A stretch of DNA of 64,000 nt from Magallana gigas (GCF_963853765.1 NC_088855.1:14818001-14882000), one strand, 5' to 3'. Counted from the stretch's first letter, positions 22,145 to 58,703 are shown. The notes: generated by a model from the sequence alone, not told the origin. Numbers and translations: made by a program.

Positions 22145-23088
22145 TTATTTTTCTAAATGGCTGTGCGGCATCATTTTGCTGCGATCGAGTCCGGTCAACA
22201 TCCGTTCCATACTTTGCAGTTCACTACTTCTACTTTGAGTGTCAAAAGATGAGGGAATGTTTAGAGACACGGGACTACGATTTTGGGGTGAATGATGACC
22301 ATATCCATGCGTACGTGGTGAAATCAGGTCAGGGGTACAACCAAGTCCCAAACCGGAAGTGTTTGGGGAGTTTGAACTGGACATTGTTGTTTTTGTGGAT
22401 GGTAGGGAATAAGGTGTAAATCTTGGACTGGTGCGAGATGTGAACATTGGTCCGATTTGGGTCCCTTGTGCGTGAGGAGGAGAGAAAGAGCTGCTTCCTG
22501 TGAATGAACTTCCGGTAGAGTATGCCGGTTGTAAAAGAGTCTGGTTATGTGGGGAGAGGGAACTCAATGAGAGCGACAACGGGTGTGCGGGTGGTAAACT
22601 GCTAATGTCACTTTGTCCAGTGCTGAAAAATGGAAGCTGCGAAGAAAAGGGAGAGCTTCCGAACATGTGCCCAAGAGGGAAAGGCATCGAAGACGGTGAA
22701 GAAAAAAGCCCGTTGGATGGGTACATGAATGGAAACATTGCGTGTGTGGCGGAGGGTTGAACCACCGTAACATTGGGTGGTTTCGTTGGTTCTTTGCAGA
22801 TGCTGTCAATGGGGGAAGCACTAGAGGATAAGTCTGGTGATTTCCGGCGATCATCACGGATACTTTCGTCACTACTCTCTCCTTCGTGGTCACTCAGACT
22901 CTTGAATGTAGAATTGCTGACGTCGGACCGGTTAAACTCGTCCCCCCGGGTCGGTGACGGTGATTCCTCCCTTTTGCAAACTTTTTCAGTTTCTGTGGGG
23001 GATGCTGGTTTCTCGCTGTCGAATAATTTGACCGGGGATTCAGGTCTCTTGGGTGAACTTGGAATTGCAGCACTAATAAGTTCTTGTT
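22145..23088 (-). CDS. TBX2: Tbx2/3 exon 6 (Ser/Pro-rich C-terminus)
   Basis: ctcttctag|(E)[18 protein letters not shown]...[26 protein letters not shown]; lies within the 327-aa ORF of the track. Confidence 0.9.
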
Positions 23089-56400: not shown

Positions 56401-58703
56401 TTTACAACAAGACAAAAATTCTTACTGCTATATTCCAGACTTGAACTCCATTTCCATAACCTAGTATTAACAGCAGTGGTACACCTTTACTTTCATTTGT
56501 GTTGAGGTCAGGGTTGGAAGCCACGTCTAAAATGAACATGTTAATGACTTAATCTTACCTTTTAATGAAATAATTTTGAAAAAAAAAACCTCAGTCAAAT
56601 CTAATTTCTTTGCAAATCATCTTCATGTGAATAATTCCTTGTTCTTCACCACACTTTTTTTTTTACAAGGAATGATGATAAATTGCTTCAATATATAATG
56701 TGCCTCTTATAATATAGAATTGAAAGAAAAAAATGTCATATGATAATTTGTACTCAGAAATAAATATAAATATTTTTTGAAGCACAATAGCCATATTATG
56801 TATCTGTAATCAAGCCTTACTTGCATCCCTATCAACATAAGACACAGTTATCCGATAATACCAGTGTCTTGGGCTGAAACAATGAGATCAAGACTTTCCT
56901 ATTTAATACCCATTATAACCAGTAAGTGTAATTTACATACCATTGATATCTGACTTGGCGAACTGGACCCATTGAATCCTCTCCTTGTCCTCAGGTTTAC
57001 TGTTCCCAGTGTAGGCCTATAAAAACAGAACAAGTAATTAGTTTTATCAATACACAGTAACATGCATCGTCGGATACTCACAGGTGTTCACGTCTTTTAC
57101 TAGGATACCAATGGGTGATCACATCTTTTACTCGCTCACGGGATATGCATGGGTGTTCATAATTTTACTCAGATACCCATAGCTGATCATGTCTTCTAAG
57201 ATGTGATCACTAGTGGGCATCGGACGATGAGTAATATGTACCCACGTGTTTTTCTCCTGTTCAATAATATATACATGTACTTTTCCTTCTGTTTTACTCA
57301 ACTGTATGAGTCCCCAAAATCCTAACGCCTGCAAACACAAACTCACTCTCAGAGCACTCTCTTTCTTTTATTACATGATACAAATGTATTTTATACTGTC
57401 AGTGTAAATTATAAAATTTGTTAAACCTGATATGATATCATTGCTTTTTAGCTTCTTTCAAATATAACTTCAAAACATTAACTTATTATTTTGTTAATTT
57501 TAAAATGACAGAAGTGTAAGCATGAAAGGTTAAAATGGAATTTCCACACTGAATGGCAGACATGTTTTTAGGAGATTCATTTTGTTGAAATAATTACACA
57601 TAAATACAGTAAATGATTAATATTTTTTTGTGCACTGATACATGTAAATTCAAGTGATTGTGTTTTTCTAGACCCTATGAAACCTTACCTGTGGTACCAC
57701 GTCTGATATGAAATCTACAACACTCTCCATCACACTCTTCTCACTACAACAAAAAAATACAGCAATCATACATGCAAATCTACTATTTTCATTCTGTAGT
57801 GCAACAATTGAAGTACAGACATGTAAATCTTGTAAAAATTTAAAATATACAATTGTGCACTCAATGTTTCCTGATTTGTCTTGAGCAATCCCAAATAATT
57901 TACGCCATTCTTTCCCTATGGGAGAGCAACCTTATTTTTGTCCTGATGTGATGTAGGGGTTACCTCATCAGTCCAAATTATGTTTATTTCTATTCATTGA
58001 CCATGTTAACAGATACAGTCGAACTTCGTTATCTCGAACTAGGTGGGGCTGTGAGATATCCAAATATTTGAGATATCCACAGTAAAATACTTTAAAAATA
58101 GGTGGTTTGGACTTAAAAATCACTTCGACATATCCATTGTATTCGATATATTGGTGTTTGTGATATTGAAGTTTAACTGTACATGTAGATTGACCAACAT
58201 GAAATTGAAAATCATGATTGGATGAATAACAGGAAATTTTATGATTAAATTTGAATATATGTAAAAATAAATATACAACTTCATATCAAAGAGAATGAGT
58301 CCTTTCCTCAGATTTGTCAACTCTCATTTCTTCCCTCTCCTCAAAACTCACGAGATGTTCAGAATTTAATTATATGTACATTTCATTCATCTCAATTATG
58401 CATGTAATAAATATTGCAATTTCAATAATCATGATAATTTACCCTCATGGAGATAACAAAGACACATAAAAAGAAAGCTAAATGCTAAAAACAAATTTCA
58501 CGAACATTTCCTTAAGCCTAATCAGATCAGGGACAGGAATAAAATGTTATTCATCTCTGATCAATTTGTATACAATTTTTGAACCACTGTCACCACCAAA
58601 AAATACACAAACAGACAATTTAAAATGGCGTTTACCTGAAAGCCTGTGGTCTTATGACATTGTGGCTTAATTTCATATTTCTCTTTGGAGAATCTGCAGC
58701 CAT
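44323..58703 (-). CDS. BCAS3: BCAS3 (microtubule-associated cell migration factor / Rudhira; WD40-like phagophore factor), complete, 22 coding exons, 891 aa
   Basis: Exons (minus): 58636-58703, 57689-57743, 56941-57016, 56426-56526, 56102-56183, 55833-55896, 55341-55451, 54995-55071, 54621-54697, 53558-53641, 53225-53389, 52512-52742, 52058-52151, 51482-51631, 51085-51348, 49812-49971, 49298-49401, 48547-48647, 48078-48271, 47818-47939, 47451-47624, 44323-44444. Total 2676 nt with consistent phases. Recognisable BCAS3 motifs: [112 protein letters not shown]. Confidence 0.95.
45585..46205. repeat. A/C-skewed degenerate tandem / low-complexity tract with C23 run
   Basis: (CAA)n-rich; recurring CCAAGACT(T)A and CC(A/T)GAAAC motifs at roughly 85-bp spacing; poly-C 46112-46134. 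Confidence 0.8.
47028..47415. mobile_element. TA-flanked MITE (outer) interrupted by a nested MITE, in BCAS3 last intron
   Basis: Termini TACTGTTGTTTCATCAAT and TATGAAACCACAATA (imperfect inverted repeats). Confidence 0.5.
47128..47317. mobile_element. Inner nested MITE with TACTGT...ACAGTA termini
   Basis: TACTGTTGAATCATTTAAATTTGTTGG matches the reverse complement of CCACAAATTCTAATGCTTCCACAGTA. Confidence 0.6.
47451..47624 (-). CDS. BCAS3: BCAS3 exon 21
   Basis: [16 protein letters not shown]...[12 protein letters not shown]...ISH|gtatgt. Confidence 0.88.
47818..47939 (-). CDS. BCAS3: BCAS3 exon 20
   Basis: [16 protein letters not shown]...PLLIEA|gttagt. Confidence 0.88.
48078..48271 (-). 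CDS. BCAS3: BCAS3 exon 19
   Basis: [23 protein letters not shown]...DLESL(K)|gtgaga. Confidence 0.92.
48547..48647 (-). CDS. BCAS3: BCAS3 exon 18
   Basis: [34 protein letters not shown]|gtacat. Confidence 0.9.
49298..49401 (-). CDS. BCAS3: BCAS3 exon 17
   Basis: [22 protein letters not shown]...SHS|gtaatc. Confidence 0.85.
49812..49971 (-). CDS. BCAS3: BCAS3 exon 16 (GC donor)
   Basis: [21 protein letters not shown]...TQWHLQ(R)|gcaagt. Confidence 0.85.
50333..50915 (+). mobile_element. Non-autonomous Helentron / pearl-like element with ~180-bp tandem core, in BCAS3 intron 15
   Basis: Starts TT|ACTAGA. Two ~180-bp core copies (GTACCC at 50471, 50651, 50832), CCGT/CCGC microsatellite remnant at ~50846-50861, 3' hairpin AACCGGATTTTTCC-GTT-GGAAAATCCGGTT 50881-50910. 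This modular layout matches bivalve pearl/DINE-type elements. Confidence 0.7.
51085..51348 (-). CDS. BCAS3: BCAS3 exon 15
   Basis: [28 protein letters not shown]...LAVDKR|gtaact. Confidence 0.9.
51482..51631 (-). CDS. BCAS3: BCAS3 exon 14
   Basis: [28 protein letters not shown]...SPTSTG|gtatgt. Confidence 0.9.
52058..52151 (-). CDS. BCAS3: BCAS3 exon 13
   Basis: [31 protein letters not shown]|gtaaaa. Confidence 0.92.
52512..52742 (-). CDS. BCAS3: BCAS3 exon 12
   Basis: [19 protein letters not shown]...[14 protein letters not shown]|gtgggg. Confidence 0.92.
52982..53068. repeat. ~3 x 29-bp minisatellite
   Basis: TT(G/T)GCATTTCATATTTCACTTA units at 52982, 53011, 53040. Confidence 0.9.
53225..53389 (-). 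CDS. BCAS3: BCAS3 exon 11
   Basis: [14 protein letters not shown]...[17 protein letters not shown]|gtaaat. Confidence 0.9.
53558..53641 (-). CDS. BCAS3: BCAS3 exon 10
   Basis: [28 protein letters not shown]|gtacgc. Confidence 0.92.
53985..54096. mobile_element. Foldback MITE (near-perfect 112-bp hairpin) in BCAS3 intron 9
   Basis: TIR AGTCTCGTTCAAC/GTTGAACGAGACT with inner arms CCGTAAATCTCCGAC/GTCGGAGATTTACGG; flanked by GAGTTAAATA (53974-53983) and GAGTTCAATA (54098-54107), a putative ~10-bp TSD. Confidence 0.7.
54621..54697 (-). CDS. BCAS3: BCAS3 exon 9
   Basis: [26 protein letters not shown]|gtaagg. Confidence 0.92.
54995..55071 (-). CDS. BCAS3: BCAS3 exon 8
   Basis: [25 protein letters not shown]|gtgagt. 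Confidence 0.9.
55341..55451 (-). CDS. BCAS3: BCAS3 exon 7
   Basis: [36 protein letters not shown](R)|gtcagt. Confidence 0.9.
55686..55846. repeat. 7 x 23-bp tandem repeat spanning the BCAS3 exon 6 donor
   Basis: Unit GTATCTTACCTGGTACTA(T/A)CAGT starting at 55686, 55709, 55732, 55755, 55778, 55801, 55824. Confidence 0.95.
55833..55896 (-). CDS. BCAS3: BCAS3 exon 6
   Basis: [21 protein letters not shown](S)|gtaaga; donor is repeated in the adjacent tandem array. Confidence 0.88.
56102..56183 (-). CDS. BCAS3: BCAS3 exon 5
   Basis: [27 protein letters not shown]|gtgagt. Confidence 0.9.
56426..56526 (-). CDS. BCAS3: BCAS3 exon 4
   Basis: DVASNPD...[18 protein letters not shown]|gtaaga. Confidence 0.9.
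56941..57016 (-). CDS. BCAS3: BCAS3 exon 3
   Basis: [25 protein letters not shown]|gtatgt. Confidence 0.9.
57689..57743 (-). CDS. BCAS3: BCAS3 exon 2
   Basis: [18 protein letters not shown]|gtaagg. Confidence 0.9.
58016..58179. mobile_element. Tc1/mariner-type MITE in BCAS3 intron 1
   Basis: TA|CAGTCGAACTTCGTTATCTC ... GTGATATTGAAGTTTAACTG|TA: degenerate TIRs with TA target duplication. Confidence 0.65.
58636..58703 (-). CDS. BCAS3: BCAS3 exon 1
   Basis: [22 protein letters not shown](S)|gtaaac. Confidence 0.88.

Follow-up and report, generated by a model that had tools for sequence, protein, structure and literature searches.

A BCAS3-Tbx2/3 gene pair in the oyster Magallana gigas, probably an ancestral linkage

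In the oyster Magallana gigas, BCAS3 lies directly upstream of a T-box gene of the Tbx2/3 type on the same (minus) strand. This linkage is real and, in our view, probably ancestral (a conclusion we hold with moderate confidence); it is an example of an already described kind of linkage, and the oyster pair and the vertebrate BCAS3-TBX2 pair are most likely one and the same. We analyzed a 64,000-nucleotide stretch of the oyster genome (GCF_963853765.1, NC_088855.1:14818001-14882000), referred to here as the window; all positions are counted from its first nucleotide. The gene pair had been proposed from the sequence alone, with outer limits that turned out to be exactly the stop codon of the Tbx2/3 gene (22145) and the start codon of BCAS3 (58703). 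The order and strand claimed there are borne out by Pfam matches, protein mapping, RNA, and matches to solved structures (Table 1).

BCAS3 is complete in the window, with 22 coding exons over approximately 15 kb. The Pfam model BCAS3_WD40 (PF21034) matches one of these exons with 100.6 bits (cut-off 26.3), and all five exon matches to this model genome-wide fall at this single locus. A transcript-derived BCAS3 protein of 891 amino acids (P0165) maps end to end, from the initial methionine to the last residue at 44326, with 77-100% identity over most of its length and 51-80% where HSPs overrun exon ends. Three further proteins (P0172, P0169, and P0166) map exon by exon and collinearly between the same two ends, and the mapping of P0006 is also full-length. 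The C-terminal BCAS3 domain (PF12490) is a precomputed domain on P0165, P0166, P0169, and P0172. With both the N-terminal WD40 propeller and the C-terminal domain found, the gene is, judged by its sequence, a member of the BCAS3 (Rudhira) family. PolyA RNA covers 43800-44800 at a depth of 1-12, in the orientation of minus-strand RNA, and carries a splice junction from approximately 44445 to 47451: 19 reads and 2 contigs have a loose end at 44445, the sequence of which is found at 47452-47481. The intron so defined is the last and by far the largest in the gene, all others being approximately 1.1 kb or shorter. The 3' UTR extends to approximately 43800-44085, and the RNA 3' end is at approximately 43800. 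At the opposite end of the gene, a short stretch conserved in Tegillarca granosa probably belongs to the 5' UTR or promoter of BCAS3 itself.

The T-box gene downstream, Tbx2/3-A, was recognized by the Pfam T-box model (PF00907), which gives 127 bits on the central T-box exon and 31 bits on another exon of the gene. Compared with solved structures, the central exon matches human TBX3 best (188 bits), followed by TBX5 (129), TBX1 (120), T (Brachyury; 96), and TBX21 (86); the control, a different oyster T-box exon, scores 184 bits with TBX1 versus 120 with TBX3. The named database relatives of the exon, compared as exon-sized fragments rather than as full-length Tbx2/3 proteins, are Optomotor-blind (omb), TBX2, TBX3, and bi. 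By its sequence, then, the gene is of the Tbx2/3 subfamily, closer to TBX2/TBX3/omb than to other T-box subfamilies, an assignment made by match scores and named relatives rather than by a formal tree of all subfamilies. It agrees with the type originally proposed.

The two genes are separated by 15-16 kb, which differs from the gap between human BCAS3 and TBX2 (approximately 7 kb). The prediction that this stretch holds no recognizable gene withstood scrutiny: there is no Pfam match among 7 ORFs, no Rfam family across 28380-43799, and zero polyA RNA depth over 41000-43600 in two runs.

Table 1. Coordinates of features at the oyster BCAS3-Tbx2/3 locus (positions in the window)
Feature	Position	Strand	Details
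Spacer 3' of Tbx2/3-A	1..22144	.	CpG o/e 0.98; leads to Tbx2/3-B
Tbx2/3-A coding span	22145..28379	-	~667 aa, six exons; Pfam, PDB match, open frames, splice sites
Tbx2/3-A exons	28379-28042, 26412-26145, 24338-~24192, 23572-23496, 23376-23207, 23148 (or 23142)-22145	-	First four are the T-box exons; last includes the stop codon
Central T-box exon of Tbx2/3-A	26145..26412	-	Exon used for subfamily assignment
Gap, BCAS3 3' end to Tbx2/3-A start codon	28380..43799	.	15-16 kb, no recognizable gene; CpG o/e 0.93
(AG)n microsatellites in gap	39779-39835, 40959-41009		Tandem-repeat search
BCAS3 transcription unit	43800..58703	-	Pfam exon matches, full-length protein mapping, polyA RNA
BCAS3 stop codon	44323-44325	-	Last codon at 44326
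Last BCAS3 intron	44445..47450	-	3.0 kb, GT..AG ends; read/contig junction, exon mapping
Sharp CpG switch	45540..46105	.	o/e 0.8-1.0 below 45540, 0.2-0.45 above 46105
CAA-rich 85-bp repeat at CpG switch	45625-45899		Tandem-repeat search
BCAS3_WD40 exon	52494-52736	-	PF21034
Stretch just 5' of BCAS3 start codon	58768..58828	-	80% identity, same position in Tegillarca granosa (blastn)

The CpG content of the locus changes abruptly within BCAS3. The observed/expected ratio (CpG o/e) is 0.9-1.15 from approximately 55 kb before the window's start to position 45540, so that both Tbx2/3 genes described here and their spacers form one domain of approximately 100 kb without CpG depletion. The 70 kb left of this domain have ratios of 0.3-0.5, and the BCAS3 body (above 45.9 kb) has a ratio of only 0.36, as against 0.92-0.98 over Tbx2/3-A, the gap, and the spacer. 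On its right-hand side the domain stops within the last intron of BCAS3, and therefore the last exon and the 3' UTR of this gene sit in the Tbx2/3 domain; the parts that escape CpG depletion are the last 1.1 kb of the intron and the last exon. With CpG o/e taken as a proxy for methylation, retention of CpG implies that the Tbx2/3 domain is unmethylated in the germline, as is typical of developmental regulators, and depletion implies that its flanks, the right one being the BCAS3 body, are methylated. By two proxies, the CpG contrast and the presence of the last BCAS3 exon in polyA RNA, the two genes would be regulated differently, BCAS3 as a housekeeping gene and Tbx2/3 as a developmental one.

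Tbx2/3-A has a tandem paralogue, Tbx2/3-B, on the same strand approximately 35 kb downstream and outside the window, beginning 13.2 kb beyond its start; ORFs of the intervening spacer (1-22144) have no Pfam match. The T-box exon of Tbx2/3-B is likewise of the Tbx2/3 type (191 bits with TBX3 versus 128 with TBX5). The duplication appears to be old, because the two genes, while 95% identical in the central T-box exon, share 63% identity in exon 1 and differ at 48% of fourfold-degenerate sites. The region upstream of Tbx2/3-A has no similarity to the rest of the CpG-rich domain, and thus there is no sign of duplicated enhancers. Horton et al. 2008, as cited in PMC6669545, are said to have described the linkage of Tbx2/3 with Tbx4/5, which likewise consists of tandem T-box genes on one strand; both oyster genes, in contrast, are of the Tbx2/3 type, and the sole TBX5-leaning T-box exon on this chromosome is 18.6 Mb away and ambiguous (142 versus 133 bits). 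The original prediction mentioned neither Tbx2/3-B nor the CpG domain edge in BCAS3.

The same arrangement is found in a gastropod. In the limpet Patella caerulea, BCAS3 (SNE40_006514, 4481002-4499855, plus strand) lies upstream of a Tbx2/3 exon model (SNE40_006518, 4744406-4744834, plus strand) on one 64-Mb chromosome, in the same order and on the same strand relative to each other as in oyster, and the oyster central T-box exon is 91% identical to the limpet exon. Between the two lie 245 kb and three unnamed gene models, their locus tags being four apart. Because P. caerulea keeps the same-strand order, the linkage goes back at least to the gastropod-bivalve split. The bilaterian age originally suggested for it would reach deeper, and the case for it is built on three lineages (oyster, limpet, and vertebrates), two of which are molluscs.

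Other invertebrates were viewed up to 10 kb past BCAS3. Within this distance no T-box exon was found in Tegillarca, Lottia, Patella, amphioxus, Pinctada, Owenia, or Glandiceps, a result that is uninformative on linkage rather than negative; in the first six the 10 kb contain no called gene at all, and in Capitella, likewise without a T-box exon in view, the scaffold ends. In the hemichordate (acorn worm) Glandiceps talaboti, the next gene downstream of BCAS3, on the same strand, begins after 6 kb and encodes 657 amino acids; there is no Pfam match on record for it and, in the 4 kb visible, no similarity to Tbx2/3 exon 1, and it is apparently no T-box gene. The microsynteny survey proposed at the outset has thus yielded one linked case, the limpet, and one species where the next gene is apparently a different one. 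On the upstream side, the neighbors of BCAS3 in invertebrates are 0.4-7.7 kb away and differ in every species where they could be identified (CYTH/SET, RabGAP, HEATR6-like, SWAP70-like, and OGFOD2-like), and therefore the region appears to be otherwise freely rearranged. No fused BCAS3 and T-box gene models were found, 10 long BCAS3 homologues having BCAS3 domains only, and among ENA/Logan fragments no contig was common to BCAS3-exon and T-box-exon matches. T-box fragments were seen in the ticks Hyalomma and Rhipicephalus sanguineus; the BCAS3 matches came from other tick species.

We consider it reasonably likely that the BCAS3-Tbx2/3 order comes from an early bilaterian ancestor and has been kept through the reach of the Tbx2/3 regulatory landscape toward BCAS3; both the age and the regulatory function are inferred. 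A compact, broadly expressed BCAS3 is followed head to tail by a tandem pair of Tbx2/3 genes, and the regulatory landscape upstream of Tbx2/3 would extend as far as BCAS3 and a short way into its 3' end. Separating the two genes would then harm one member of the pair, as the concept of a genomic regulatory block implies, and the proposed overlap would be the reason for the persistence of the order. In oyster, any such overlap seems confined to the 3' end of BCAS3. A bolder version can be offered tentatively, although we think it rather doubtful, in which the conserved object would be the junction. The 3' end of BCAS3, with its last intron and last exon, would have been embedded in an unmethylated, Polycomb-type Tbx2/3 domain since the bilaterian ancestor, and an overlap of a few kilobases, not enhancers distributed over BCAS3, would have tied the pair together over more than 550 million years. 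Vertebrates would secondarily have expanded the overlap into huge BCAS3 introns, and oyster would represent the compact, near-ancestral form, suited to mapping the minimal constraint.

It is also conceivable, but unlikely, that BCAS3 and Tbx2/3 belonged to the same ancestral linkage group and are still, or again, neighbors without selection. By a rough estimate, if genes are scrambled only inside conserved ancestral linkage groups, each a few hundred genes in size, two distant genomes could have a few dozen adjacencies in common by chance, and a match between two lineages is therefore weak on its own. On the one hand, such a relic or coincidence would fit the small number of lineages in which the linkage is confirmed, the different gene adjoining BCAS3 in the hemichordate, the wide spacing and intervening models in limpet, and the outcome of our search for conserved non-coding sequence. 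In this search, 254 kb of oyster DNA were compared by blastn with BCAS3 loci (plus 10 kb on each side) of seven species separated from oyster at the level of orders or phyla (Tegillarca, Pinctada, Lottia, Patella, Owenia, Capitella, and amphioxus), and matches were limited to exons, transposon fragments, and approximately 60 bp 5' of BCAS3. On the other hand, order and orientation are identical in oyster, limpet, and vertebrates, the upstream neighbors of BCAS3 differ between species, all 6 of the informative invertebrates have 10 kb or more without a gene on its downstream side, and in vertebrates arrays of conserved non-coding elements keep the pair together.

The first interpretation of the locus went further than the end-overlap that we prefer, with BCAS3 as a housekeeping bystander that hosts enhancers. 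In a full block of this kind, candidate Tbx2/3 enhancers would be scattered in the introns of a passive BCAS3. The locus has been so described in vertebrates (PMC2745767), a limb enhancer within bcas3 has been reported (cited in PMC6669545), and in oyster the last intron exceeds all others in size and, in its 3' part, resembles the Tbx2/3 domain in CpG content. However, BCAS3 is only approximately 15 kb long in oyster versus 75 kb in amphioxus and 577 kb in a snake, its introns other than the last are short, and its body is CpG-depleted, unlike the Tbx2/3 domain. Furthermore, blastn against these distant species revealed no conserved non-coding elements in BCAS3 introns shared with other bivalves and no conserved non-coding cluster spanning BCAS3. 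A full block of the vertebrate style is therefore improbable here, and BCAS3 fits poorly as an enhancer host in oyster. That the locus is an artefact of assembly or annotation, made of two regions without real linkage, is extremely improbable: we found no point in its favor, there is no N in the 254 kb around the locus, 76-88% of the words sampled from 41000-46999 recur in contigs from several independent studies, parts of 44021-46068 are each crossed by a single contig 1.3-1.6 kb long, and limpet independently shows the same arrangement.

If the linkage is ancestral, the oyster locus is a form of the known vertebrate block that is approximately forty times more compact (as judged by oyster and snake BCAS3), with a sharp edge visible in the sequence. 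Compactness and a sharp edge together make the bystander question testable in a small locus, namely, whether such a gene stays beside a developmental gene as a host of enhancers or simply through an overlap of the two units at one end. In the literature searched, we found no paper linking BCAS3 to invertebrate microsynteny, and the supplementary material of Gaiti 2017 and Robert 2022 does not name BCAS3. For a microsynteny specialist, the result is expected rather than surprising: Irimia et al. 2012 named Tbx among the target families of ancient regulatory blocks (PMC3514665), and the pairs in that study likewise join a developmental transcription factor with an unrelated, broadly expressed neighbor across phyla. 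They required 4 or more lineages and no more than 4 intervening genes (PMC3514665), whereas the oyster pair is documented in three.

The closest known system is the vertebrate BCAS3-TBX2(-TBX4-BRIP1) block (human 17q23, zebrafish chr15), published as a genomic regulatory block in 2009 using Synorth, in which clustered conserved non-coding elements extend across BCAS3 and TBX2 in both human and zebrafish (PMC2745767); the brip1-tbx4-tbx2b-bcas3 cluster is conserved across teleosts (PMC6669545). There, as in oyster, BCAS3 is immediately upstream in the same orientation, as the original prediction correctly held; no gene lies between, and another T-box gene comes next on that strand, farther downstream. 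The vertebrate block differs from the oyster locus in that its BCAS3 extends over hundreds of kilobases and contains conserved non-coding arrays, none of which were detected inside oyster BCAS3. It also differs in its downstream T-box gene, which is Tbx4/5 in vertebrates and a second Tbx2/3 in oyster, a difference that bears on the evolution of the Tbx2/3/4/5 cluster.

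All coding evidence for BCAS3 and for the neighboring T-box gene, Tbx2/3-A, lies on the minus strand of the window, which belongs to a 564-Mb genome of 29 contigs; many runs of one organism, and one RNA run bearing the label "oyster metagenome", contain part of the window. The Pfam domain BCAS3_WD40 matched the exon at 52494-52736 (100.6 bits) and proved confined to the BCAS3 locus when the whole genome was searched in six frames; used as a query against 1.8 billion representative proteins, this exon returned 442 BCAS3 relatives. Full-length BCAS3 proteins of Tegillarca, Pecten, Pinctada, and Ostrea, together with a transcript-derived 891-aa protein (P0165), mapped collinearly onto the window as 22 exons; identity to P0165 was 77-100% over most of its length and lower where HSPs overran exon ends. 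Over 43800-44800, two runs supply polyA RNA reads whose first mate is on the plus strand, the orientation predicted for a minus-strand RNA; 10 reads in one run and 8 in the other break at 44445 and continue as the sequence of 47452-47481. These reads define the last BCAS3 intron, which has GT..AG ends and spans 3.0 kb; every other intron measures at most about 1.1 kb, and the entire gene about 15 kb. The gene also carries two repeats: a 23-bp unit in 7.2 copies (95% matches), which adjoins the exon at 55835-55897 and whose minus strand bears a motif resembling a splice donor, and a 181-bp unit present twice in an intron (93% matches).

Open frames and splice sites give Tbx2/3-A six exons and about 667 aa; Pfam detected the T-box on two exons, and a genome-wide T-box search added further ones. 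Compared with all solved structures, its central exon scored 188 bits with human TBX3, 129 with TBX5, 120 with TBX1, 96 with Brachyury, and 86 with TBX21. A different oyster T-box exon, serving as a control, preferred TBX1 (184 bits) over TBX3 (120 bits); thus, the comparison of bit scores does separate T-box subfamilies. Judged by these scores, the gene appears to be of the Tbx2/3 type, and a grouping outside Tbx2/3 was not borne out. Between the 3' end of BCAS3 (about 43800) and the start codon of Tbx2/3-A, the gap measures about 15.4 kb; counted from the stop codon of one gene to the start codon of the other, it is 16 kb. Pfam matched none of its seven ORFs, nor any of the three that lie in the spacer following Tbx2/3-A; no Rfam family reached threshold anywhere in the window, and polyA depth is zero over 41000-43600. 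The original prediction had placed BCAS3 directly upstream of Tbx2/3 on the same strand, with no recognizable gene between them; gene models and orientation agree with it in every particular, and the absence of Pfam, Rfam, and polyA signals confirms the empty interval.

Features of the BCAS3-Tbx2/3 region and of the linked limpet locus (window coordinates unless a contig, locus, or species is given)
Feature	Position	Strand	Remark
BCAS3	58703-44326	-	start codon to last codon
BCAS3_WD40 exon	52494-52736	-	
Last BCAS3 intron	47450-44445	-	
23-bp repeat	55680-55844		
181-bp repeat	50471-50838		
Tbx2/3-A	28379-22145	-	ATG 28379, stop codon 22145-22147
Tbx2/3-B	C3:14794054-14804836	-	starts 13.2 kb and ends at least 23.9 kb ahead of the window
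Distant T-box exon	C3:33492750-33493031	+	
CpG o/e 0.9-1.15	about 55 kb before window start to 45540		
CpG o/e 0.36	45901-58703		BCAS3 body
CpG o/e 0.3-0.5	about 70 kb further left		
CAA-rich 85-bp repeat	45625-45899		
Retrotransposon pol ORFs	C3:14705087-14710132, 14752991-14755672	-	L015-L019; 1682 aa and 894 aa
APH-domain exon	L015:5598-5930		
125-aa ORF	62087-62464	-	
Cysteine-rich exons (extended window coordinates)	71092-71535, 111649-112074	-	
Cysteine-rich exons (extended window coordinates)	75432-75863, 90985-91404, 96827-97216, 117056-117481	+	
Patella caerulea BCAS3	4,481,002-4,499,855	+	SNE40_006514
Patella caerulea Tbx2/3 exon-2 model	4,744,406-4,744,834	+	SNE40_006518

The genome-wide search also revealed a second T-box gene, Tbx2/3-B, starting beyond the low end of the window on the same strand, so that the order on the minus strand is BCAS3, Tbx2/3-A, Tbx2/3-B. 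Its exons have the structure and the N-terminal motif of Tbx2/3-A. Its central exon scored 191 bits with TBX3 and 128 with TBX5, and the closest database fragments carry the names Optomotor-blind, TBX2, TBX3, and bi; this preference and these names identify a tandem Tbx2/3 paralogue, not Tbx4/5. The two genes are 95% identical in the central T-box exon, 89% in the exon that follows it, and 63% in exon 1, and they differ at 22 of 46 fourfold-degenerate sites; on sequence divergence, the duplication is old. A further T-box exon lies on the same chromosome 18.6 Mb away. It leans toward TBX5 (142 bits, with 133 for TBX3 and 128 for TBX1) and could be Tbx4/5 or Tbx20; if it is Tbx4/5, the oyster Tbx2/3-Tbx4/5 cluster would be broken and the BCAS3-Tbx2/3 linkage retained.

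CpG observed/expected ratios, computed across 254 kb, delimit an undepleted domain of ~100 kb that contains both Tbx2/3 genes. Its right-hand edge is abrupt, with closely spaced CpGs running to 45539 and no other before 46106. This edge falls within the last intron of BCAS3, 1.1 kb upstream of the last exon in the direction of transcription, and the CAA-rich repeat lies exactly there. In invertebrates, CpG depletion reflects gene-body methylation and marks germline-methylated genes, typically housekeeping ones, whereas developmental loci that are unmethylated keep their CpGs. Read in this way, the ratios indicate that both Tbx2/3 genes would occupy one unmethylated domain, with the BCAS3 3' end embedded at its edge. 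The depleted block on the left contains retrotransposon ORFs and an APH-domain gene; the 894-aa pol ORF carries RNase H and integrase domains, and the APH-domain exon nearby was read as ACAD10/11-like. Upstream of BCAS3, both strands carry similar cysteine-rich exons, at least six in number and each about 130-148 aa long (loci L004-L006 and L023-L025), which look like a tandem gene family specific to the lineage. The 125-aa ORF, likewise upstream of BCAS3, has no Pfam match, and CpG depletion over 62-70 kb suggests that this stretch holds a further expressed gene.

Linkage in other species was viewed over 10 kb on each side of BCAS3 and with exon-sized Tbx2/3 fragments. In the limpet Patella caerulea, BCAS3 and a Tbx2/3 exon 91% identical to that of the oyster lie on one 64-Mb chromosome in the oyster order and, as in the oyster, on a shared strand, 245 kb apart with three models (SNE40_006515 to SNE40_006517) between them. 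Within the 10 kb viewed downstream of BCAS3, no T-box exon was found in Tegillarca, Lottia, amphioxus, Pinctada, or Owenia; the Capitella scaffold stops 3.9 kb past BCAS3. In these five species and Patella, the downstream 10 kb contain no called gene at all, whereas upstream neighbors are 0.4-7.7 kb away and, where identified, vary by species, an asymmetry consistent with a regulatory desert on the downstream side of the gene. The result from the hemichordate Glandiceps talaboti leans against linkage: a gene with a 657-aa product and no recorded Pfam match starts 6 kb past BCAS3 in the same orientation, and the visible 4 kb lack Tbx2/3 similarity. At the amphioxus locus (Branchiostoma floridae CM022896.1:1980947-2076184), the gene directly upstream of BCAS3 encodes DUF4042 and HEAT repeats and is HEATR6-like; human HEATR6 also lies near BCAS3 on 17q23, and the proximity of these genes may reflect a wider conserved neighborhood. 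Tegillarca granosa has two BCAS3 genes on one chromosome (P0006/P0164, 92% identical), and in Patella caerulea two chromosomes carry BCAS3 models (SNE40_006514 and SNE40_002297; P0399/P0403); either true gene duplication or haplotypes left uncollapsed could account for these copies.

The order and orientation of the oyster pair are those of vertebrates, and the linkage is at least as old as the common ancestor of gastropods and bivalves. The bilaterian age originally predicted is the most economical reading, although few lineages stand behind it and Glandiceps talaboti leans the other way. We consider it probable that an ancestral linkage has been kept by cis-regulatory constraint, which would act at the junction between the two genes. 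A neutral relic or a coincidence is unlikely but not negligible. By a rough reckoning, chance alone could give two distant genomes a few dozen common adjacencies where genes shuffle only within ancestral linkage groups, and much of the weight for ancestral linkage comes from the limpet and from orientation. Somewhat more doubtful is a full block of enhancers hosted by BCAS3 as a bystander, as also proposed originally. Vertebrates offer precedents, with a limb enhancer within bcas3 (cited in PMC6669545) and intragenic BCAS3 elements that persist beside tbx2a where the BCAS3 copy has been lost (PMC2745767). However, oyster BCAS3 is short and CpG depleted, and its introns lack conserved non-coding sequence at the distances compared, which disfavors enhancers spread through the gene; these data favor a more restricted overlap, at the 3' end of the gene. 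With blastn, the 254-kb region matched the BCAS3 loci of seven other species only in exons, transposon pieces, and a stretch of ~60 bp on the 5' side of the BCAS3 start codon, so that conserved non-coding elements, a defining feature of regulatory blocks, were not seen at this depth; the species compared are distant, and the result is compatible with conservation among oysters. An assembly artefact is very improbable, the limpet showing the same order and strand.

In the library searched, no paper treated BCAS3 and invertebrate microsynteny together, and the pair may already be present in published supplementary tables. In vertebrates, a single cluster of human-zebrafish conserved elements extends over both TBX2 and BCAS3 (Synorth, PMC2745767), and a brip1-tbx4-tbx2b-bcas3 cluster occurs across teleosts (PMC6669545). 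Irimia et al. (2012; PMC3514665) list Tbx among the target families of ancient regulatory blocks. What the oyster adds is a molluscan and very compact candidate case both of this known regulatory block and of the known class of ancient microsyntenic pairs.
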